This document shows positions 12,750-47,809 of a stretch of 64,000 nucleotides of DNA, piece after piece; within the stretch, counting starts at the first letter, position 1, and every line of letters starts with the position of its first letter. Under the pieces are notes generated by a model, which worked only from the letters and a program-made list of their open reading frames with translations, was not told the origin of the DNA and did not search any database. The translations under genes and the position numbers were made by a program. The stretch is taken from the NCBI RefSeq assembly GCF_033153115.1, contig NW_026889755.1, forward strand, positions 558,001 through 622,000. The letters run 5' to 3'. The DNA is from Saccostrea echinata (taxonomy: Eukaryota).

Positions 12750-15700
12750 GTTGTCCGAGCGGAACCTTTGGGTATATGTGTGAGAATACCTGCTCAAAAA
12801 ACTGTATTGGTATATGTAATCATACTAATGGTCAATGTGACTGTTTATTAGGGTTCAAAGGTTCACCAAACTGCACGGCAGGTTGGTGCATATACAGCAT
12901 TTATATTTTATCACATTAAATTTCGAATACCTCTCTGAGAGCTAAATAAGTCAGTATTTTAAAATGATTTTGAAAGGCTAAGGAAAAGAATAATGTTTTC
13001 GAAGGAAAAAAGGTGTCATGATTTATTTCAAATATGCGTGTAATTGGCATGTTGTATTTCAAACAAAATGATAAAATAAATATTTCCCAGCTTTGAATCT
13101 GTAATTAGATTTTTTGAGAAAGCTTAAATGACTCACGAATATGCTATATAAATTATTTAAATCTCTATGATACAAGCTTATCATTGTTATTGTTAATAAT
13201 TGTAGAATGTTCGGGCGGATTCTTTGGTGTAAATTGTCAGCATAAATGTAGTGGTCACTGTCTTAACGGTAAGACCTGCAGTAGGTTTGATGGTATCTGT
13301 CCGCAGGGATGTCAGAATCAATATCAAAGACTGACTTGTGATTATAAATGTATGTTTTTACTGAAAAAAAAATTGTGTCATAAAAGTCATTAAAGCTCTT
13401 TTCTGTCTTTAAAAGCAATAAATAAATAAATAAAATAAAAATAATAATAAAAAAAAAAATAAATATATAAATAAATAAATGAATAAATCGGACAATATTG
13501 GAATACAAAGAGCCAGCTAATGTCAACAGGCCCTGCAAAATACAAAAAAAATTGTGTTTGTGTATCCTATCTATCCATGTATATTTATAAAGTTTATGAA
13601 CCAAAGTCTTCGTATATGAGTAATTATTTGGGCGGATCCAAGCTTCGTGTGCTGTTATGTAGTATCCAAACCAATGCCGTATCCAGAAAACAAGGAATTT
13701 TCTTCACTTTTCACTCGGTTTTTGGGAAAATTCGATGTGGCCGCAAGCATCGACCAAAAAAACATTTTAACCAGAAATACTTTAACATAAAAGGGGTTGA
13801 TTTATACTGGTTTTGTTCTGGTCGTGGGCTGCGGCCACAGTGAATTTTGTAAAATTCTGATACTATCAGTCGTCTGCTTTACGGATCTTGACCTGAGGGG
13901 AATGGAATTAGCTGGGTGTTTTAATAATATTCTGAGAAAATGAATAACAATAGAATGCATGCTTACTTTGTAGAGAATCTAAATGATATAAAGAATTAAT
14001 TTGATAAATCAGTTGTTCAAAATTCGTTGTCGCGACCACCTTTTTTACTTTCGTTTTCATTCCAGGCAACGACAATCCGGAACAAGCAAAACATACATGT
14101 ACAATGTATAGTACATAATATTATAACGTCTAAATCTTAGAGAGTGTTTTGTAAAAGGGTATATGAAATGTTATTGTGGTTGATGATTATTATGTGGATT
14201 TTAAGGCAAAAACCTAACGTCTCTAGGTTGTATAGCTAACTCTAAATATAGACGTCGTCATTGTTTACATTAACAACGAACAGTGACGTGCCAAAAGTTT
14301 TCTCCATATTTTGGTATTTCGTTTGATATTTCACTATAAACAATACCGTTGTTTAATCAAACATTTATAAAAGATTTATTAACAAATTTCATAGTAAAAG
14401 AAAACAGCGCTCAGATGAAATATATCTCAAATTTACGTTTTTAAAAATACATGTACTGGAAAATTTACATTAATCAATGCAAAGGTGATTTTTTAAAAAA
14501 ATTAACTAGCACTAACCACCCTTTCTCCGAAAGCTTTATTTGTACATGAATATACTTAGTATATTTTAATTTAAGTAGGAATTGAAAATCCTTCAATGAA
14601 TTAAATTCATATACTTCTTATACATCAGTTAGAAATCCTTTTATTATGATTTTTTTATTGTTGTCTTTTCAGAAAAAACAACTGAAGTGATACTTAGTTG
14701 AGAACAGTGGAGTATATAAGTATATGCTATATATATGTTCCTAAAACAATGAAAATTTACCTATAAAGTTTTCGTTCAGAAAATTTAAGATGAGAATAAA
14801 TAAATGACTAAAATGATACCCATTATAATGGAAACTTCTGAATGCGACAACTTCATGTAGTTTTAAGAAATTATAAATGCTGAAAAAAAATATATATTAA
14901 TAATATTATATATTCATATTATCTTTATTTGCATAAGTCTTTGAATTCTAACTCAGTCATTACACGCTCCCCCTTTTTGGATAGTAAAAACTCTCCAAAA
15001 TATAAATCCACTGACTCTTACTTAATCAAAATATATTGATAATAAAAATATCTTCTTATATTATATACAATGTAGTTATATAATTTGATACTCATTTGTA
15101 GGAGGGGGCGCCTGGCTGTGCCGTTTAGGTTATTGTCATTCTTGATATTCTTAATTTTAGCAAATAAAATATACAAAATATTGTATATTTAATTTCATTT
15201 GCAAAAATAAAGTTAACCAGGAAGGACACTATTTATAAGCTTATATATCATACTGAAAATCTCAGAAATAGGGGAAGTAAAACTACTGGGGATCTGCTGA
15301 TGCCCCTGAACGACCCTTGCTTTTGAAATCCCCTATCGCCACCAAATCAGGTGAAGTACGTACCAGGAAGATACTTTCTTTTTAAGAGAGAGATGAAAAT
15401 AGTTAGCATTATAATATTTATAATCCACAAATAGATACAGGCACGCAAAATCGGGGGGGGGGGGGGCTAGCCCCCCAAGTTTTTTCCAGACATAATTTTT
15501 ACCATAGCAAATGTTCATTGAAGTGTCCCCCATCTTTTTGTTGCAGTGTAGTTAAATAAAAAATTGGTACTGAAAGAAGTTACCCCCCCCCCTCCACGAA
15601 ATAACATTTTCGAGTGTGTACATTTTTTTTTTTTTTTTGCTCGTCAAGTTTCTTTCGGGTAAGTTGAAAAGTTGAAGCAAATTCTCAGACTGCCCTCCCC

Positions 15701-45100: not shown

Positions 45101-47809
45101 GAGTACGTTAAAAATGTGAATGTAAATTAAAAAGAATATTTGTAAAGAAATGTTTATCACTTACCTCATATGCCATTTCTGATTTTAATTCTATTTTAAC
45201 GGACATATGTGCATTTAACACCCGTTTATTGCTTATAATTCACATGAAACAAATAAACATGTTGGTGTACCACTAAATTACAACAGAAAAATACTGTATA
45301 TAAGCCCGATTTTTCAAGGTACATTTTAGTCCCGATTTATAATCAAGTCCTACAAATATCGGCATTTTCTGGGAGAGTAAAAGTGGTATTCATTCAATTT
45401 AACTGTGAACATGCAGGAAAGATAGTTATGAGGTACCCTAAGCATTATGAGAAATAAACTGTACATATTTTAATCGTCTTAATTTTGATTTTAAATGCTA
45501 CCTAAAGAACAAATATTTATATTATACCTGCAACAAATTAAGAAACAGATAGAAAAAAAAAACAAAACAAAACAAGAACAATTACCTGAAATTGTAACAA
45601 TTCCCGCACAAACTATAAGTGAATCAGTAGAAAATTTCTCTAACTTTAAAAATTCAATCGACCTATAGACGAAATGACTAAACTAACATGTAAGTAAAAG
45701 TTTATTACATGTATATTTTCAAACTGAATTGCTTATAAAACTTTTAGAAAGAACTCTGAAAAGAACTAGTTTCATAAATCTTTTTCAATTTTTTTGAAAG
45801 AAATGCATGGCTAAGAATGACAGAAAATAATATTTTTAAAATAACATAGAATGTAAGGACGGAACCTATGGTCCTGGATGTGCTTATAACTGCAGTTACC
45901 ACTGCCTTAATAAAGCCTTCTGTAATAAGGAGAATGGATTTTGTGAATTCGGTTGTAGCATCGGATATTCTGGAAATCTCTGTAAGGATGGTAAGTTTTC
46001 ACAGGATGATTATGAGTCATTCAGCCAACTGAACGGTCACTGAAAGATATTTGGAAAGGGGGTTTAAAGACTGGGCTCTGTTATTGAGTTATATTGCATT
46101 AATATCAGTCACCTTAATTCACTTAATGAGGTTGCATAGTTTTATTTTGTGTTTGTCATATTTTGATAATATTTTAATGTCCATGACAGGTATTTTAAAT
46201 TCAACATTTATGGTTCTTTCGACAGTTTGTCCCAGTGGATTTTTTGGTCAAAATTGCAGGAACCATTGTAGTAAAAACTGTATCAACGGAAAATGTAGTT
46301 ACATAGATGGAGCTTGTACAGAGGGATGCTCAAAAGGTTACACGGGGATTAGGTGTTTGTACTGTAAGAATCAAAACATTATCAAATTGCGATTTTCATG
46401 TACATTCAATTGAAGGCGATTCCTTACGAAGATCATTGTTTTAAGGAAACAGTGCCAGAGAAAAAAAAAATTATGAAGACATGTTAATATAGCTGTAATA
46501 TTGGTGCTCAAAGTGTGTTTTCTTTTCAGTCTGTCAGGAAAGCTATTATGGTGAAAACTGTTCTAACCTTTGTCCAACAAAATGCCGTTATACATGTCAC
46601 CATGTACAGGGAACCTGCATTGAAGGTTGGTAAGCGCAACCTTGCCTGAGTTATGTATATTATAAATACGCAAAATTATATTGATTAAAAATATTTGGTT
46701 CTAAGAAAAACATTGTTTGACCATATAGTATCAAAATTACCACGTCAGACCCTAAAAAGGAAGAATGAGAGATTTTATTGAATGTGTATAATCTGAAATG
46801 TTAAAATCGATTGTGATACTTATGATAGCTGGGTGAGTTATTTTTGTCTCCTGAAATACTGAAATCTATGTAAAAAAAAGATCCTTTCAAAGTTGGTAAC
46901 TTATTGGTCTTATATACATGTTTTACTGCTGATAAAGATAAGGTGAGGACCTGTGTCAGGCTTTGTTATAATTATGTCTTAGTTTTGTCTAAAAAAGATT
47001 TCAAATATAATTTATATACAATGTACACCAAAATATCTCAACTGGTTACATAAAATTAATAAGTGTGCAATTCTTTCTGGAGGAATACTTGAAGATTATA
47101 CTTGACTTATCATTTCTGTTTTATATATTTTTATTTGACAAGGAAGCTCCACCGATATCAATATATTTATGATATCAGACAGTATCTTGAGATCGATGTG
47201 ATTATCAGTGGATATACCTGCCTCTGCTTTAAAGATTATAGCGTAGGACTTATTGTCAGAGTGATTTTTGTATGGAGAGGGGCAGAGTAAATCTCAAAAT
47301 AAAAAAAAAAAAAACAAATACTTGATTTACAAATTTATTTATTTTTGTTTTATTTCTGTTGTAGATGAAGCGTCAACAGGACAATGGAAACTAGGATTTT
47401 CAGTTTCGGCGACGCTTAACATTTTATTGTTAATATTTTTTGCTGCCTTTATTACACTCAACAGGTAATATAAAATAGTGATTATATTGTTGTTTTTTGT
47501 ATTTTGAATTGCAATGCGACTTCATTTTTTTTTATTTCACTCTATATATCCTTAATATGAAAACGTAATTTACATTATGAATTTGTTTATCTTTTTGTTT
47601 TCAGGAAAAAACTCAGTATTTTTTTTCAAAGGGAGAAAATACACCAAATTGCAAGAAATAGCAACAAAACAAATATAGGACCTGCAAATGTACAAACTAA
47701 TTCAGAAAAACCATCGTACGAGGATTTAAATACTTGTGAAAATAAAGTCGAATACCAAAAATTAAATGTAGAAAACAAAATTGCTTATGAAAATCTCGCA
47801 TTTATATAA
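42113..47809 (+). CDS. Gene C: signal peptide, F-type-lectin domain, 4 full plus 1 short EGF-type exon, TM and tyrosine-motif tail; paralog of gene B, about 504 aa
   Basis: Exons 42113-42191 (signal; alternative ATG 42137), 43248-43484, 43903-44145 (lectin), 44591-44728, 44814-44951, 45850-45990, 46226-46363, 46530-46625 (EGF), 47365-47464 (TM WKLGFSVSATLNILLLIFFAAFITL), 47605-47809 (tail ..SYEDL..VEYQKL..IAYENLAFI*). Sum 1515 bp, in frame. Confidence 0.9.
42430..42598. mobile_element. Palindromic element end with GCGAAGC apex, in intron 1 of gene C
   Basis: GCGCGGATCATCAGATCAAAC-GA-GACGC-GAA-GCGTC-GA-GTTTGGTCTGATGATCTGCGT (42488-42546), with weaker outer arms. Confidence 0.6.

Follow-up and report, generated by a model that had tools for sequence, protein, structure and literature searches.

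A tandem pair of predicted receptors with an F-type-lectin-like head, an EGF stalk and ITAM-like tails in the oyster Saccostrea echinata

Introduction

Signalling through tyrosine-based activation motifs of immunoreceptors (ITAMs) as well as paired activating and inhibitory receptors are usually taught as immune inventions of the vertebrates, and Draper is the lone well-studied invertebrate case. Draper works through Src42A and Shark, a Syk-type kinase. Here, a window of 64,000 nucleotides from the oyster Saccostrea echinata is described (RefSeq assembly GCF_033153115.1, 923 Mb; contig NW_026889755.1, called C6 in the following, 16.1 Mb; G000:C6:558001-622000). It holds two tandem genes, B and C, and ahead of them what is probably a partial copy, unit A. 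B and C are predicted to encode type I membrane receptors with an F-type-lectin-like head, a stalk of epidermal growth factor (EGF) repeats, a transmembrane (TM) helix and a short cytoplasmic tail with three tyrosine motifs.

The closest described systems are the engulfment-type receptors CED-1, Draper, MEGF10-11 and PEAR1. These have in common with B and C the type I membrane topology, the stalk of atypical eight-cysteine EGF repeats and the YxxL or ITAM-like tyrosines of the tail. In contrast, they occur in one to three copies and carry an EMI domain and an NPxY motif, whereas the family of B and C has hundreds of members with five to six EGF repeats and the F-type-lectin-like head.

This head links the family to the F-type lectins, for instance eel agglutinin (1K12), striped bass FBP32 (3CQO), oyster bindin and lectinolysin from Streptococcus. 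The likeness extends to the fold (Z-scores of 15.5-17.2 at 19-24% identity), to an N-terminal sequence signature including a WW-x-VDL strand and to a domain built from two exons between phase-1 introns, which are called lec1 and lec2 in B and C; a gene structure for the F-type lectin MsFTL1 is also available (PMC12221842). The family described here differs from these lectins in being anchored to the membrane via an EGF stalk and in having a signalling tail. Chimeras of the F-type lectin domain listed in reviews include combinations with CTLD, pentraxin, CCP, TM and FA58C segments and one anemone protein with EGF-like domains, and the architecture of B and C is not among them.

For Crassostrea gigas, a receptor with an ITAM, CgIgR, has been reported, which recruits CgSyk and promotes phagocytosis by haemocytes (PMC6994640). 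Like B and C it is an oyster surface receptor with a cytoplasmic motif of this kind, and the presence of the signalling partners in oysters is documented by it. On the contrary, CgIgR has five Ig domains, was picked from 190 Ig-domain proteins and is not described as a member of a tandem array, and phosphatase-tailed twins have not been reported for it.

With moderate confidence, B and C are considered here to be intact tandem type I receptors of a very large oyster family, which would work by the mechanism proposed below. Judged from the sequence, their architecture combines a known fold, a known type of stalk and ITAM-like motifs; no published account of this combination was found in the literature that was searched, from which most subscription journals, the main ones on shellfish immunology included, are missing.

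Structure of genes B and C

The homology searches were run exon by exon, and tests of whole domains were made on database homologues (P0072, P0044, P0231 and others). For the joins in B and C, the computation covered exon lengths, frames and the three letters of each split codon. An exon was accepted as the signal exon if it had an ATG, encoded a hydrophobic stretch and ended at a GT donor in phase 1. The GC content of the window is approximately 32%.

Gene B covers positions 22007-41160 of the forward strand, with 11 exons, 1674 nt and 557 codons plus a stop. Exon 1 (22007-22067) encodes the signal peptide (LLFTGI...GF, phase checked). Exons 2 and 3, lec1 (26136-26366) and lec2 (26821-27057), form the head and are 74 and 77.5% identical, at the amino acid level, to the corresponding exons of C. 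The stalk is encoded by exons 4-9, namely EGF1 (30678-30815), EGF2 (30924-31064), EGF3 (32327-32467), EGF4 (32590-32730), EGF5 (34174-34305) and EGF6 (34989-35132), followed by the TM exon 10 (35246-35345). After a 5.6-kb intron, exon 11 (40953-41160) encodes a tail of the form YEEL-x8-YQEL-x7-YENF and the stop codon.

Gene C lies on the same strand at 42137-47809 and comprises 10 exons, 1491 nt and 496 codons plus a stop. Here, exon 1 (42137-42191) is a hydrophobic open reading frame (ORF) followed by GTATGT, which resembles exon 1 of B and ends in phase 1; an alternative in-frame ATG is present at 42113. It is followed by lec1 (43248-43484), lec2 (43903-44145) and five EGF exons (EGF1 44591-44728, EGF2 44814-44951, EGF3 45850-45990, EGF4 46226-46363 and the short EGF5 46530-46625). 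Exon 9 (47365-47464) encodes the end of the stalk and the TM helix with the hydrophobic stretch LGFSVSATLNILLLIFFAAFITL and is homologous to exon 10 of B. The tail exon 10 (47605-47809) reads YEDL-x8-YQKL-x7-YENL and ends with TAA.

A mechanical check found AG at all acceptors and GT at all donors of both genes and no in-frame stop in any exon. The phases run in the same order in B and C: the signal exon is 0-1, all lectin and EGF exons are 1-1, the TM exon is 1-2 and the tail exon is 2-0. The exon sizes are alike, with 138 or 141 nt for EGF exons and 100 nt for the TM exon. The two signal peptides are similar and end with GF, and the split codon fits the N-termini of annotated homologues. Furthermore, a self-comparison of the window pairs the lectin exons of B (26131-26376 and 26811-27063) with those of C (43243-43494 and 43893-44151), the TM exons (35230-35352 with 47349-47471) and the tail exons (40996-41147 with 47652-47802), and an exon-wise tblastn search adds every EGF exon to this pairing.

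These splice sites, phases and stop-free exons bear out the original prediction, made from the letters of the window, that B and C assemble into complete ORFs with signal peptide, lectin-like domain, EGF stalk, TM helix and three tyrosine motifs. The same prediction saw three head-to-tail paralogs with matching exon sizes at this locus, which is right for B and C; A consists of three exons without head or tail.

Gene B contains an assembly gap (27064-27207, shown as Ns), which starts 6 nt inside its intron 3 (27058-30677). The lec2 exon of B ends at 27057, the donor GT occupies 27058-59 and the Ns begin at 27064. Compared to C and 28 paralogs, whose alignments end at 27059-27063, this exon has its full length. 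Therefore, the gap lies in intron 3 and no coding sequence is cut. The phases on both sides fit (1 into 1), and EGF1 of B is the counterpart of EGF1 of C, with 64% identity. The flank behind the gap gave no colinear match to the introns of paralogs, only low-complexity similarity of the poly-A/T type. The two halves of B are putatively adjacent.

The gap is one of three points concerning gene structure which weigh against reading B and C as intact receptors. The second is that their splice junctions and their expression are predictions from the genomic letters. The third is the RefSeq model of C (P0231, named 'MEGF6', 288 aa). It maps at 100% to most exons of C, begins at an internal Met and agrees with the junctions lec1-lec2, lec2-EGF1 and EGF1-EGF2 given here. 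After EGF2, the model is spliced from a donor at 44982 to an internal AG inside EGF3, by which EGF5 and the TM exon are read out of frame until a stop in the TM exon. The frame-shifted form could stem from an error of annotation or from splicing that is unproductive. The donor of EGF2 used here at 44951 (C before the junction, GTAATTAT behind it) is conserved in B. For B itself, no RefSeq protein was present among the 286 retrieved proteins.

The lectin-like head

The first lectin exon of C alone matches the Pfam families PF22633 (E-value 8.4e-9, above the cut-off) and PF00754 (2.8e-6). A profile built from eight lec1 exons, searched against all sequences of the Protein Data Bank (PDB), retrieved F-type lectins only (3cqo at 4e-8, 2j1r, 4gwi, 3le0 and 1k12), among them FBP32, SpX-1, lectinolysin and eel agglutinin. 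The lec2 exon of C gave no Pfam match, and the lec2 profile yielded only chance-level matches to AMA1 in the PDB.

As a stand-in for the heads of B and C, the homologue P0072 was modeled, a fragment of 182 residues comprising signal peptide and head, which is approximately 50-65% identical to the lectin exons of both genes. The AlphaFold (AF2) model, based on an alignment of 44 rows, reached a mean predicted local distance difference test score (pLDDT) of 87.9 and a predicted template modeling score (pTM) of 0.82. A Foldseek search with this model placed FBP32 (3cqo) first (E-value 2.3e-8), and lectinolysin, SpX-1 and the eel lectin were found within the top seven, interleaved with carbohydrate-binding modules of family 32 (CBM32). 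In VIA-align, the superposition with FBP32 gave a Z-score of 17.2 and a root mean square deviation of 2.1 over 140 residues at 24% identity, and the remaining F-type lectins reached 15.4-15.9. The language-model neighbors of the head of another homologue, P0044, were clusters of FTP, pentraxin-fusion and F-type lectin proteins. Judged from the model and the profiles, the head is a beta-sandwich whose fold and lineage are F-type-lectin-like.

Two observations count against a straightforward lectin reading. First, chitosan-binding CBM32 modules reached Z-scores of 16.3-17.1 and are thus tied with FBP32. Second, the fucose-binding motif H-x24-R-x-D-x4-R/K is present in none of 110 family proteins, including P0231, which carries the head of C itself; in the alignment by hidden Markov model, Pro or Leu is found at the site of the His of FBP32. 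Therefore, the ligand of the head need not be a sugar, and 'lectin' is used here as the name of a fold and not of an activity.

The EGF stalk and the cytoplasmic tail

The EGF repeats are encoded one per exon and have eight cysteines each, except for the fifth repeat of C, which has six. They are of the MEGF/Tie/SREC type and would form a rigid stalk. Against solved structures, the family profile of the stalk found the EGF repeats of Tie2 (1.5e-12), an EGF-like protein and SREC-I as best matches, and the Pfam matches to EGF_laminin and PEAR1L were weak. An EMI domain was found neither in the lectin, EGF and B-tail exons of the window nor in seven full-length homologues. NPxY, the motif for CED-6/GULP, is absent from the tails of B and C and present in only 2 of 80 homologues.

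This bears directly on the names in the databases, according to which these genes would be true orthologues of CED-1, Draper or MEGF10. The names given by RefSeq and UniProt, the EGF repeats and the tyrosine motifs fit such an orthology. However, B and C are not MEGF10/Draper orthologues because both the EMI domain, sought in the exons and the seven homologues, and NPxY are missing, and the head is a different fold; the idea is therefore regarded as extremely improbable and was rejected.

A genome search with the tail exon of C found 17 copies, all of them on C6 (0.41-0.61 Mb) and on contig C27 (10.8-12.8 Mb). Across these 17 paralogous exons, the consensus is YEEL-x8-YQEL-x6-8-YENL/F. The first and the second tyrosine (Y1 and Y2) are present in all 17 exons and the third (Y3) in 16, and the columns of YEEL, YQxL and YEN exceed 80% identity, compared to a mean column identity of 54%. 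Outside this genome, 54 oyster homologues have a TM helix followed by a short tail. A pair of Yxx[LIVF] motifs with a spacing of 6-12 was found in 38 of them, and the spacing is exactly 8 in 22 of these 38. The tails of other oysters repeat the theme of TYQEL followed by YxN(L/T). On the level of sequence, the three motifs are all that is conserved in the tail of B and C, which amounts to two overlapping ITAM-like units.

The tail might nevertheless not be an activating ITAM. Instead, it could be a docking site for SH2 phosphatases, similar to the immunoreceptor tyrosine-based inhibitory or switch motifs (ITIM, ITSM), or an endocytic sorting signal of the YxxPhi type. YxxL is also an endocytic signal and fits the AP-2 motif. 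Y3 fits the ITIM consensus in approximately half of the paralogs, standing in I/L/V-x-Y-x-x-L there and in C, and Y2 of C stands in V-x-Y-x-x-L. In other oysters the motifs stand 6 to 13 residues apart, and the Yxx[LIVF] pair is missing from 16 of the 54 short tails. All of this tells against the ITAM-like interpretation. Nevertheless, the spacings of 8 and of 6-8 are fixed in the 17 paralogs while the residues between the motifs drift, and sorting signals need no fixed pairing. In addition, an ITIM would call for conservation at position -2, which is not seen at Y1 and Y2. Therefore, this alternative is considered unlikely.

The ITAM-like interpretation is in line with the original prediction, which had proposed ITAM-like tails and a lectin fold in the place of EMI. 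The Yxx(L/I)-x6-12-Yxx(L/I) spacing is present in B and C and conserved in the 17 paralogs. For the N-terminus, the Pfam and PDB profile searches and the AF2 model of the homologue agree on an F-type-lectin-like domain, with no EMI domain beside it.

Size, selection and turnover of the family

The family is very large. Genome-wide, at least 150 scored lec2 exons were counted among 389 candidates, nearly all of them open, with clusters on C6, C27, C37, C41, C16, C42, C58 and other contigs. A HMMER search with the lec2 exon of C against 1.8 billion representatives found 554 protein clusters at an E-value of at most 0.001. The named relatives that were examined (20 protein clusters and the named homologue rows) all come from Saccostrea, Magallana/Crassostrea and Ostrea. 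Their database names comprise MEGF10/11/6, draper-like, CED-1-like, PEAR1-like, Tie-1/2-like, teneurin-like, SREC2 and 'uncharacterized'. Both the expansion and the automated naming as MEGF10-like had thus been anticipated correctly. The annotation hides the family under the borrowed names MEGF10, draper, Tie, teneurin and SREC, and gene C under a truncated, frame-shifted model.

Among B, C and other paralogs, the ratio of nonsynonymous to synonymous divergence (dN/dS) is 0.17-0.48 for lec1, 0.17-0.39 for lec2, 0.16-0.34 for the EGF exons, 0.53 for the TM exon and 0.49 for the tail. Between B and C, dS is 0.5-0.9 and dN/dS is 0.16-0.53 in every exon class, and therefore both genes are under purifying selection. 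The description of the family as diversifying was not supported at exon level, where the dN/dS of 0.17-0.66 gives no exon-wide positive selection. Gene-wide positive selection was likewise rejected at this level.

The surroundings of the genes show decay as well. In the nearest copy of C (C6:475.8-483.5 kb; dS 0.07-0.08, dN/dS 0.36-0.66), EGF2 is broken by a stop or frameshift and the EGF5 exon is present twice, and an A-like unit with a stop follows (the whole region is C6:475761-487225). Since the closest paralog of C is damaged, pseudogenes are common in the cluster, which speaks against reading B and C as intact receptors. A RefSeq protein of 252 aa that is out of frame (P0002) is the model of this nearest copy and is letter-identical to the paralog 125 kb upstream on C6. 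In the 10.7 kb ahead of the window, only EGF-only fragments are present (C6:550804, 553836 and 555353). The damaged copy of C, the EGF fragments and the two EGF-EGF-TM units, A and the A-like one, together indicate a birth-and-death cluster.

In such a cluster, B, C or both might be untranscribed or non-productive copies, whose ORFs are clean because of a recent origin. The frame-shifted RefSeq model of C, the stop in EGF2 of its nearest copy, the stop in the A-like unit nearby and the EGF-only fragments upstream would fit this explanation. However, all cysteines, tyrosines and splice sites of B and C are intact, with the dS and dN/dS given above for all exons. Neutral decay over the distance between B and C would have brought stops, and therefore the clean ORFs speak against non-productive copies, an explanation that is held to be quite improbable.

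Receptor phosphatases with the same head

Members of the family also occur with a different signalling module. A complete receptor tyrosine phosphatase gene on the forward strand at C6:518931-548520, which ends 9.5 kb before the window, is colinear in exon-wise tblastn with the protein P0152 of Ostrea edulis from the lectin head through both protein tyrosine phosphatase (PTP) domains. Its lec2 exon (C6:518931) is 79% identical to that of C, and a PTP exon at C6:542799 lies between this exon and the window. The region C27:11245267-11267077 is colinear with P0152 in like manner, with head, stalk, TM helix and two PTP domains. The TM helix and the PTP domains of both genes are colinear with XP_056002458 of O. 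edulis. The RefSeq protein P0005 ('MEGF10', 353 aa) appears to cover only the ectodomain part of the phosphatase gene on C27.

Pairs of a lec2 exon followed by a PTP exon on one strand were also found on C42, C17 and C56, and inside the window no PTP exon was found. Receptor phosphatases of the family are present in other oysters as well, namely P0152 and P0097 of O. edulis, P0135 of C. virginica and P0006 of S. cucullata. With the Pfam profile for tyrosine phosphatases, 1025 candidate exons were obtained genome-wide, with arrays on C58, C48, C75, C22, C17 and other contigs. Receptor phosphatases seem on this count to be very greatly expanded, and many of them to adjoin heads of the B/C family. 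By annotation, receptor-type PTPs of the alpha/epsilon kind are the nearest known counterpart of these sister genes, with which they have the TM helix and the PTP domains D1 and D2 in common. The sister genes differ from them in the ectodomain, where they have this family's lectin-like head and its EGF stalk, and B and C in turn have no phosphatase exons.

In O. edulis, the ectodomains of the tyrosine-tailed protein P0057 and the phosphatase P0152 align over their full 451 residues at 83% identity and with no gap, and beyond that the two proteins are unrelated. Both are encoded on the same 77-Mb record, with accession numbers close to each other. The likeness of the two sequences suggests that the head was recently copied from one kind to the other or converted by it. 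In a tree of 36 lec2 exons, a distant clade stands apart at a support of 100/99, and two of its five members are confirmed as phosphatase-type. The phosphatase-type heads L006 and L015 are placed near B and C in an unresolved polytomy with tyrosine-tailed ones, where L006 groups with the ITAM-type L012 at a support of only 83/79.

The window had originally been likened to a locus of paired immune receptors, with A as the counterpart of B and C. This fails for A, which has neither head nor tail. Since phosphatase-tailed neighbors with the same kind of head exist in the upstream gene, on C27 and in the O. edulis pair, the paired idea survives in another form, as ITAM-like tail versus phosphatase. 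The vertebrate paired receptors (KIR, Ly49, SIRP, PILR and Siglec) resemble this arrangement in their clustered genes, their closely related ectodomains and their different signalling modules. In contrast to the vertebrate receptors, whose activating members signal via an adaptor at a charged TM residue, the oyster family has the activating-type motif in cis. Furthermore, the vertebrate counterpart recruits a phosphatase by its ITIM, whereas the oyster counterpart bears two PTP domains itself and would oppose the signal by these.

It is tentatively proposed that the family forms an oyster paired system. Here, one head would be used in tandem arrays with either an ITAM-like tail or a tandem phosphatase in cis, the heads would be exchanged or copied between the two, and the same ligand would both start and stop signalling by tyrosine phosphorylation. 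If true, such a system would be an invertebrate counterpart of the KIR- and SIRP-type pairs that manages without adaptors or ITIMs.

Proposed function

From the anatomy of B and C and its conservation we infer a mechanism comprising ligand, kinase, Syk docking and uptake. The head would bind a ligand that is multivalent and could be a protein or a glycan different from the classical fucose epitope. Clustering by the ligand would lead to phosphorylation of the tail tyrosines by a Src-family kinase. The doubly phosphorylated unit would then dock a protein with tandem SH2 domains, the obvious candidate being the Syk known from the oyster C. gigas, and at the third tyrosine an SH2 phosphatase may bind. 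Uptake or activation would be the outcome. The phosphatase-tailed sisters in the same arrays would probably tune or oppose the signal of the tail.

Among the transcripts over-expressed by circulating agranulocytes of C. virginica are 27 'draper-like' ones, several of MEGF type and 20 of the phosphatase category, mostly receptor-type PTPs, and one verified family member, LOC111117643 (P0237), is present in the table of differentially expressed genes between circulating and mucosal agranulocytes (PMC13070813). An immune role of B and C would be reasonable by analogy; that it draws on analogy and on this one transcriptome paper from another genus is a point on the opposite side.

Alternatively, the receptors might be real and serve a non-immune purpose such as development, the adhesion of cells or the recognition of tissue, self or gametes. 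The best solved relatives of the stalk, Tie2 and SREC, would be in line with this, with the EGF-stalk receptors Tie, PEAR1 and SREC as parallels. Furthermore, the F-type lectins of oysters include gamete (sperm) bindins (PMC5712786), and the head lacks the fucose-binding site associated with pathogens. On the contrary, hundreds of tandem copies together with pseudogenes are typical of recognition families under changing pressure, and the haemocyte data of C. virginica include many genes with such annotation names as well as the verified family member. A non-immune role is for these reasons rather doubtful, and recognition followed by uptake or activation is preferred.

A mollusc would, on the preferred reading, possess hundreds of receptors which join a lectin-type head to an ITAM-like tail, plus sisters that bear a phosphatase. 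Should the tails recruit Syk and be counteracted by their phosphatase twins, the family would represent an independent way of tuning innate recognition and would provide tractable candidate genes for disease resistance and for copy-number variation in farmed oysters. A re-annotation of the family and of its domain logic would be useful even if the function is not immune.

Unit A

Unit A consists of three exons on the forward strand, two EGF exons (12750-12881 and 13206-13349) and a TM-like exon (17767-17866). Their sizes of 132, 144 and 100 nt are those of EGF5, EGF6 and the TM exon of B, and neither a splice site nor a frame is damaged. A search of the window for further exons of A, that is for signal, lectin, EGF1-4 and homologous tail exons, found none, and the 23.7 kb searched upstream of A likewise hold none of these and no lectin remnants. 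A tail exon of the family was found neither between the TM exon of A and the start of B nor between the TM and tail exons of B nor after C. Unit A is probably a partial copy (EGF-EGF-TM) and is not a complete receptor.

A different TM chemistry and different tails had been ascribed to A. The TM exon is indeed divergent, with 25-38% identity to B and C, and contains His and Glu, whereas the tails were not found. A role of A as a counterpart receptor with a charged TM helix and adaptor pairing was rejected, since head and tail are missing and an A-like copy elsewhere has a stop. The EGF exons of A, compared to B, have a dN/dS of 0.22-0.27 at a dS of 0.8-1.0 and are therefore too clean for an old neutral relic. 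The A-like unit (EGF-EGF-TM) with the in-frame stop is located at C6:485665-487225.

Repeats and further features of the window

The 4-kb first intron of B contains a satellite of 146 bp (6.7 copies, 82% matches) and a repeat of 155 bp (2.6 copies), at 23396-24368 and 24797-25201. A second assembly gap (54003-54158) lies outside A, B and C.

A dispersed element of approximately 300 bp is present in four copies with 88-92% identity in both orientations (8752-9049, 10723-11033, 20872-21177 and 49710-50022), and copies at 6577-6805 and 12480-12682 are weaker. The element is probably a short interspersed element or a miniature inverted-repeat transposable element. Finally, A, B and C are flanked by three pairs of repeats, which are approximately 50 kb apart and 93-96% identical (4865-5002 and 57766-57903, 6056-6373 and 55467-55785, 6289-6558 and 57983-58254). 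Two of the pairs are inverted and one is direct. They may derive from a single mobile element or mark where a rearranged segment ends.

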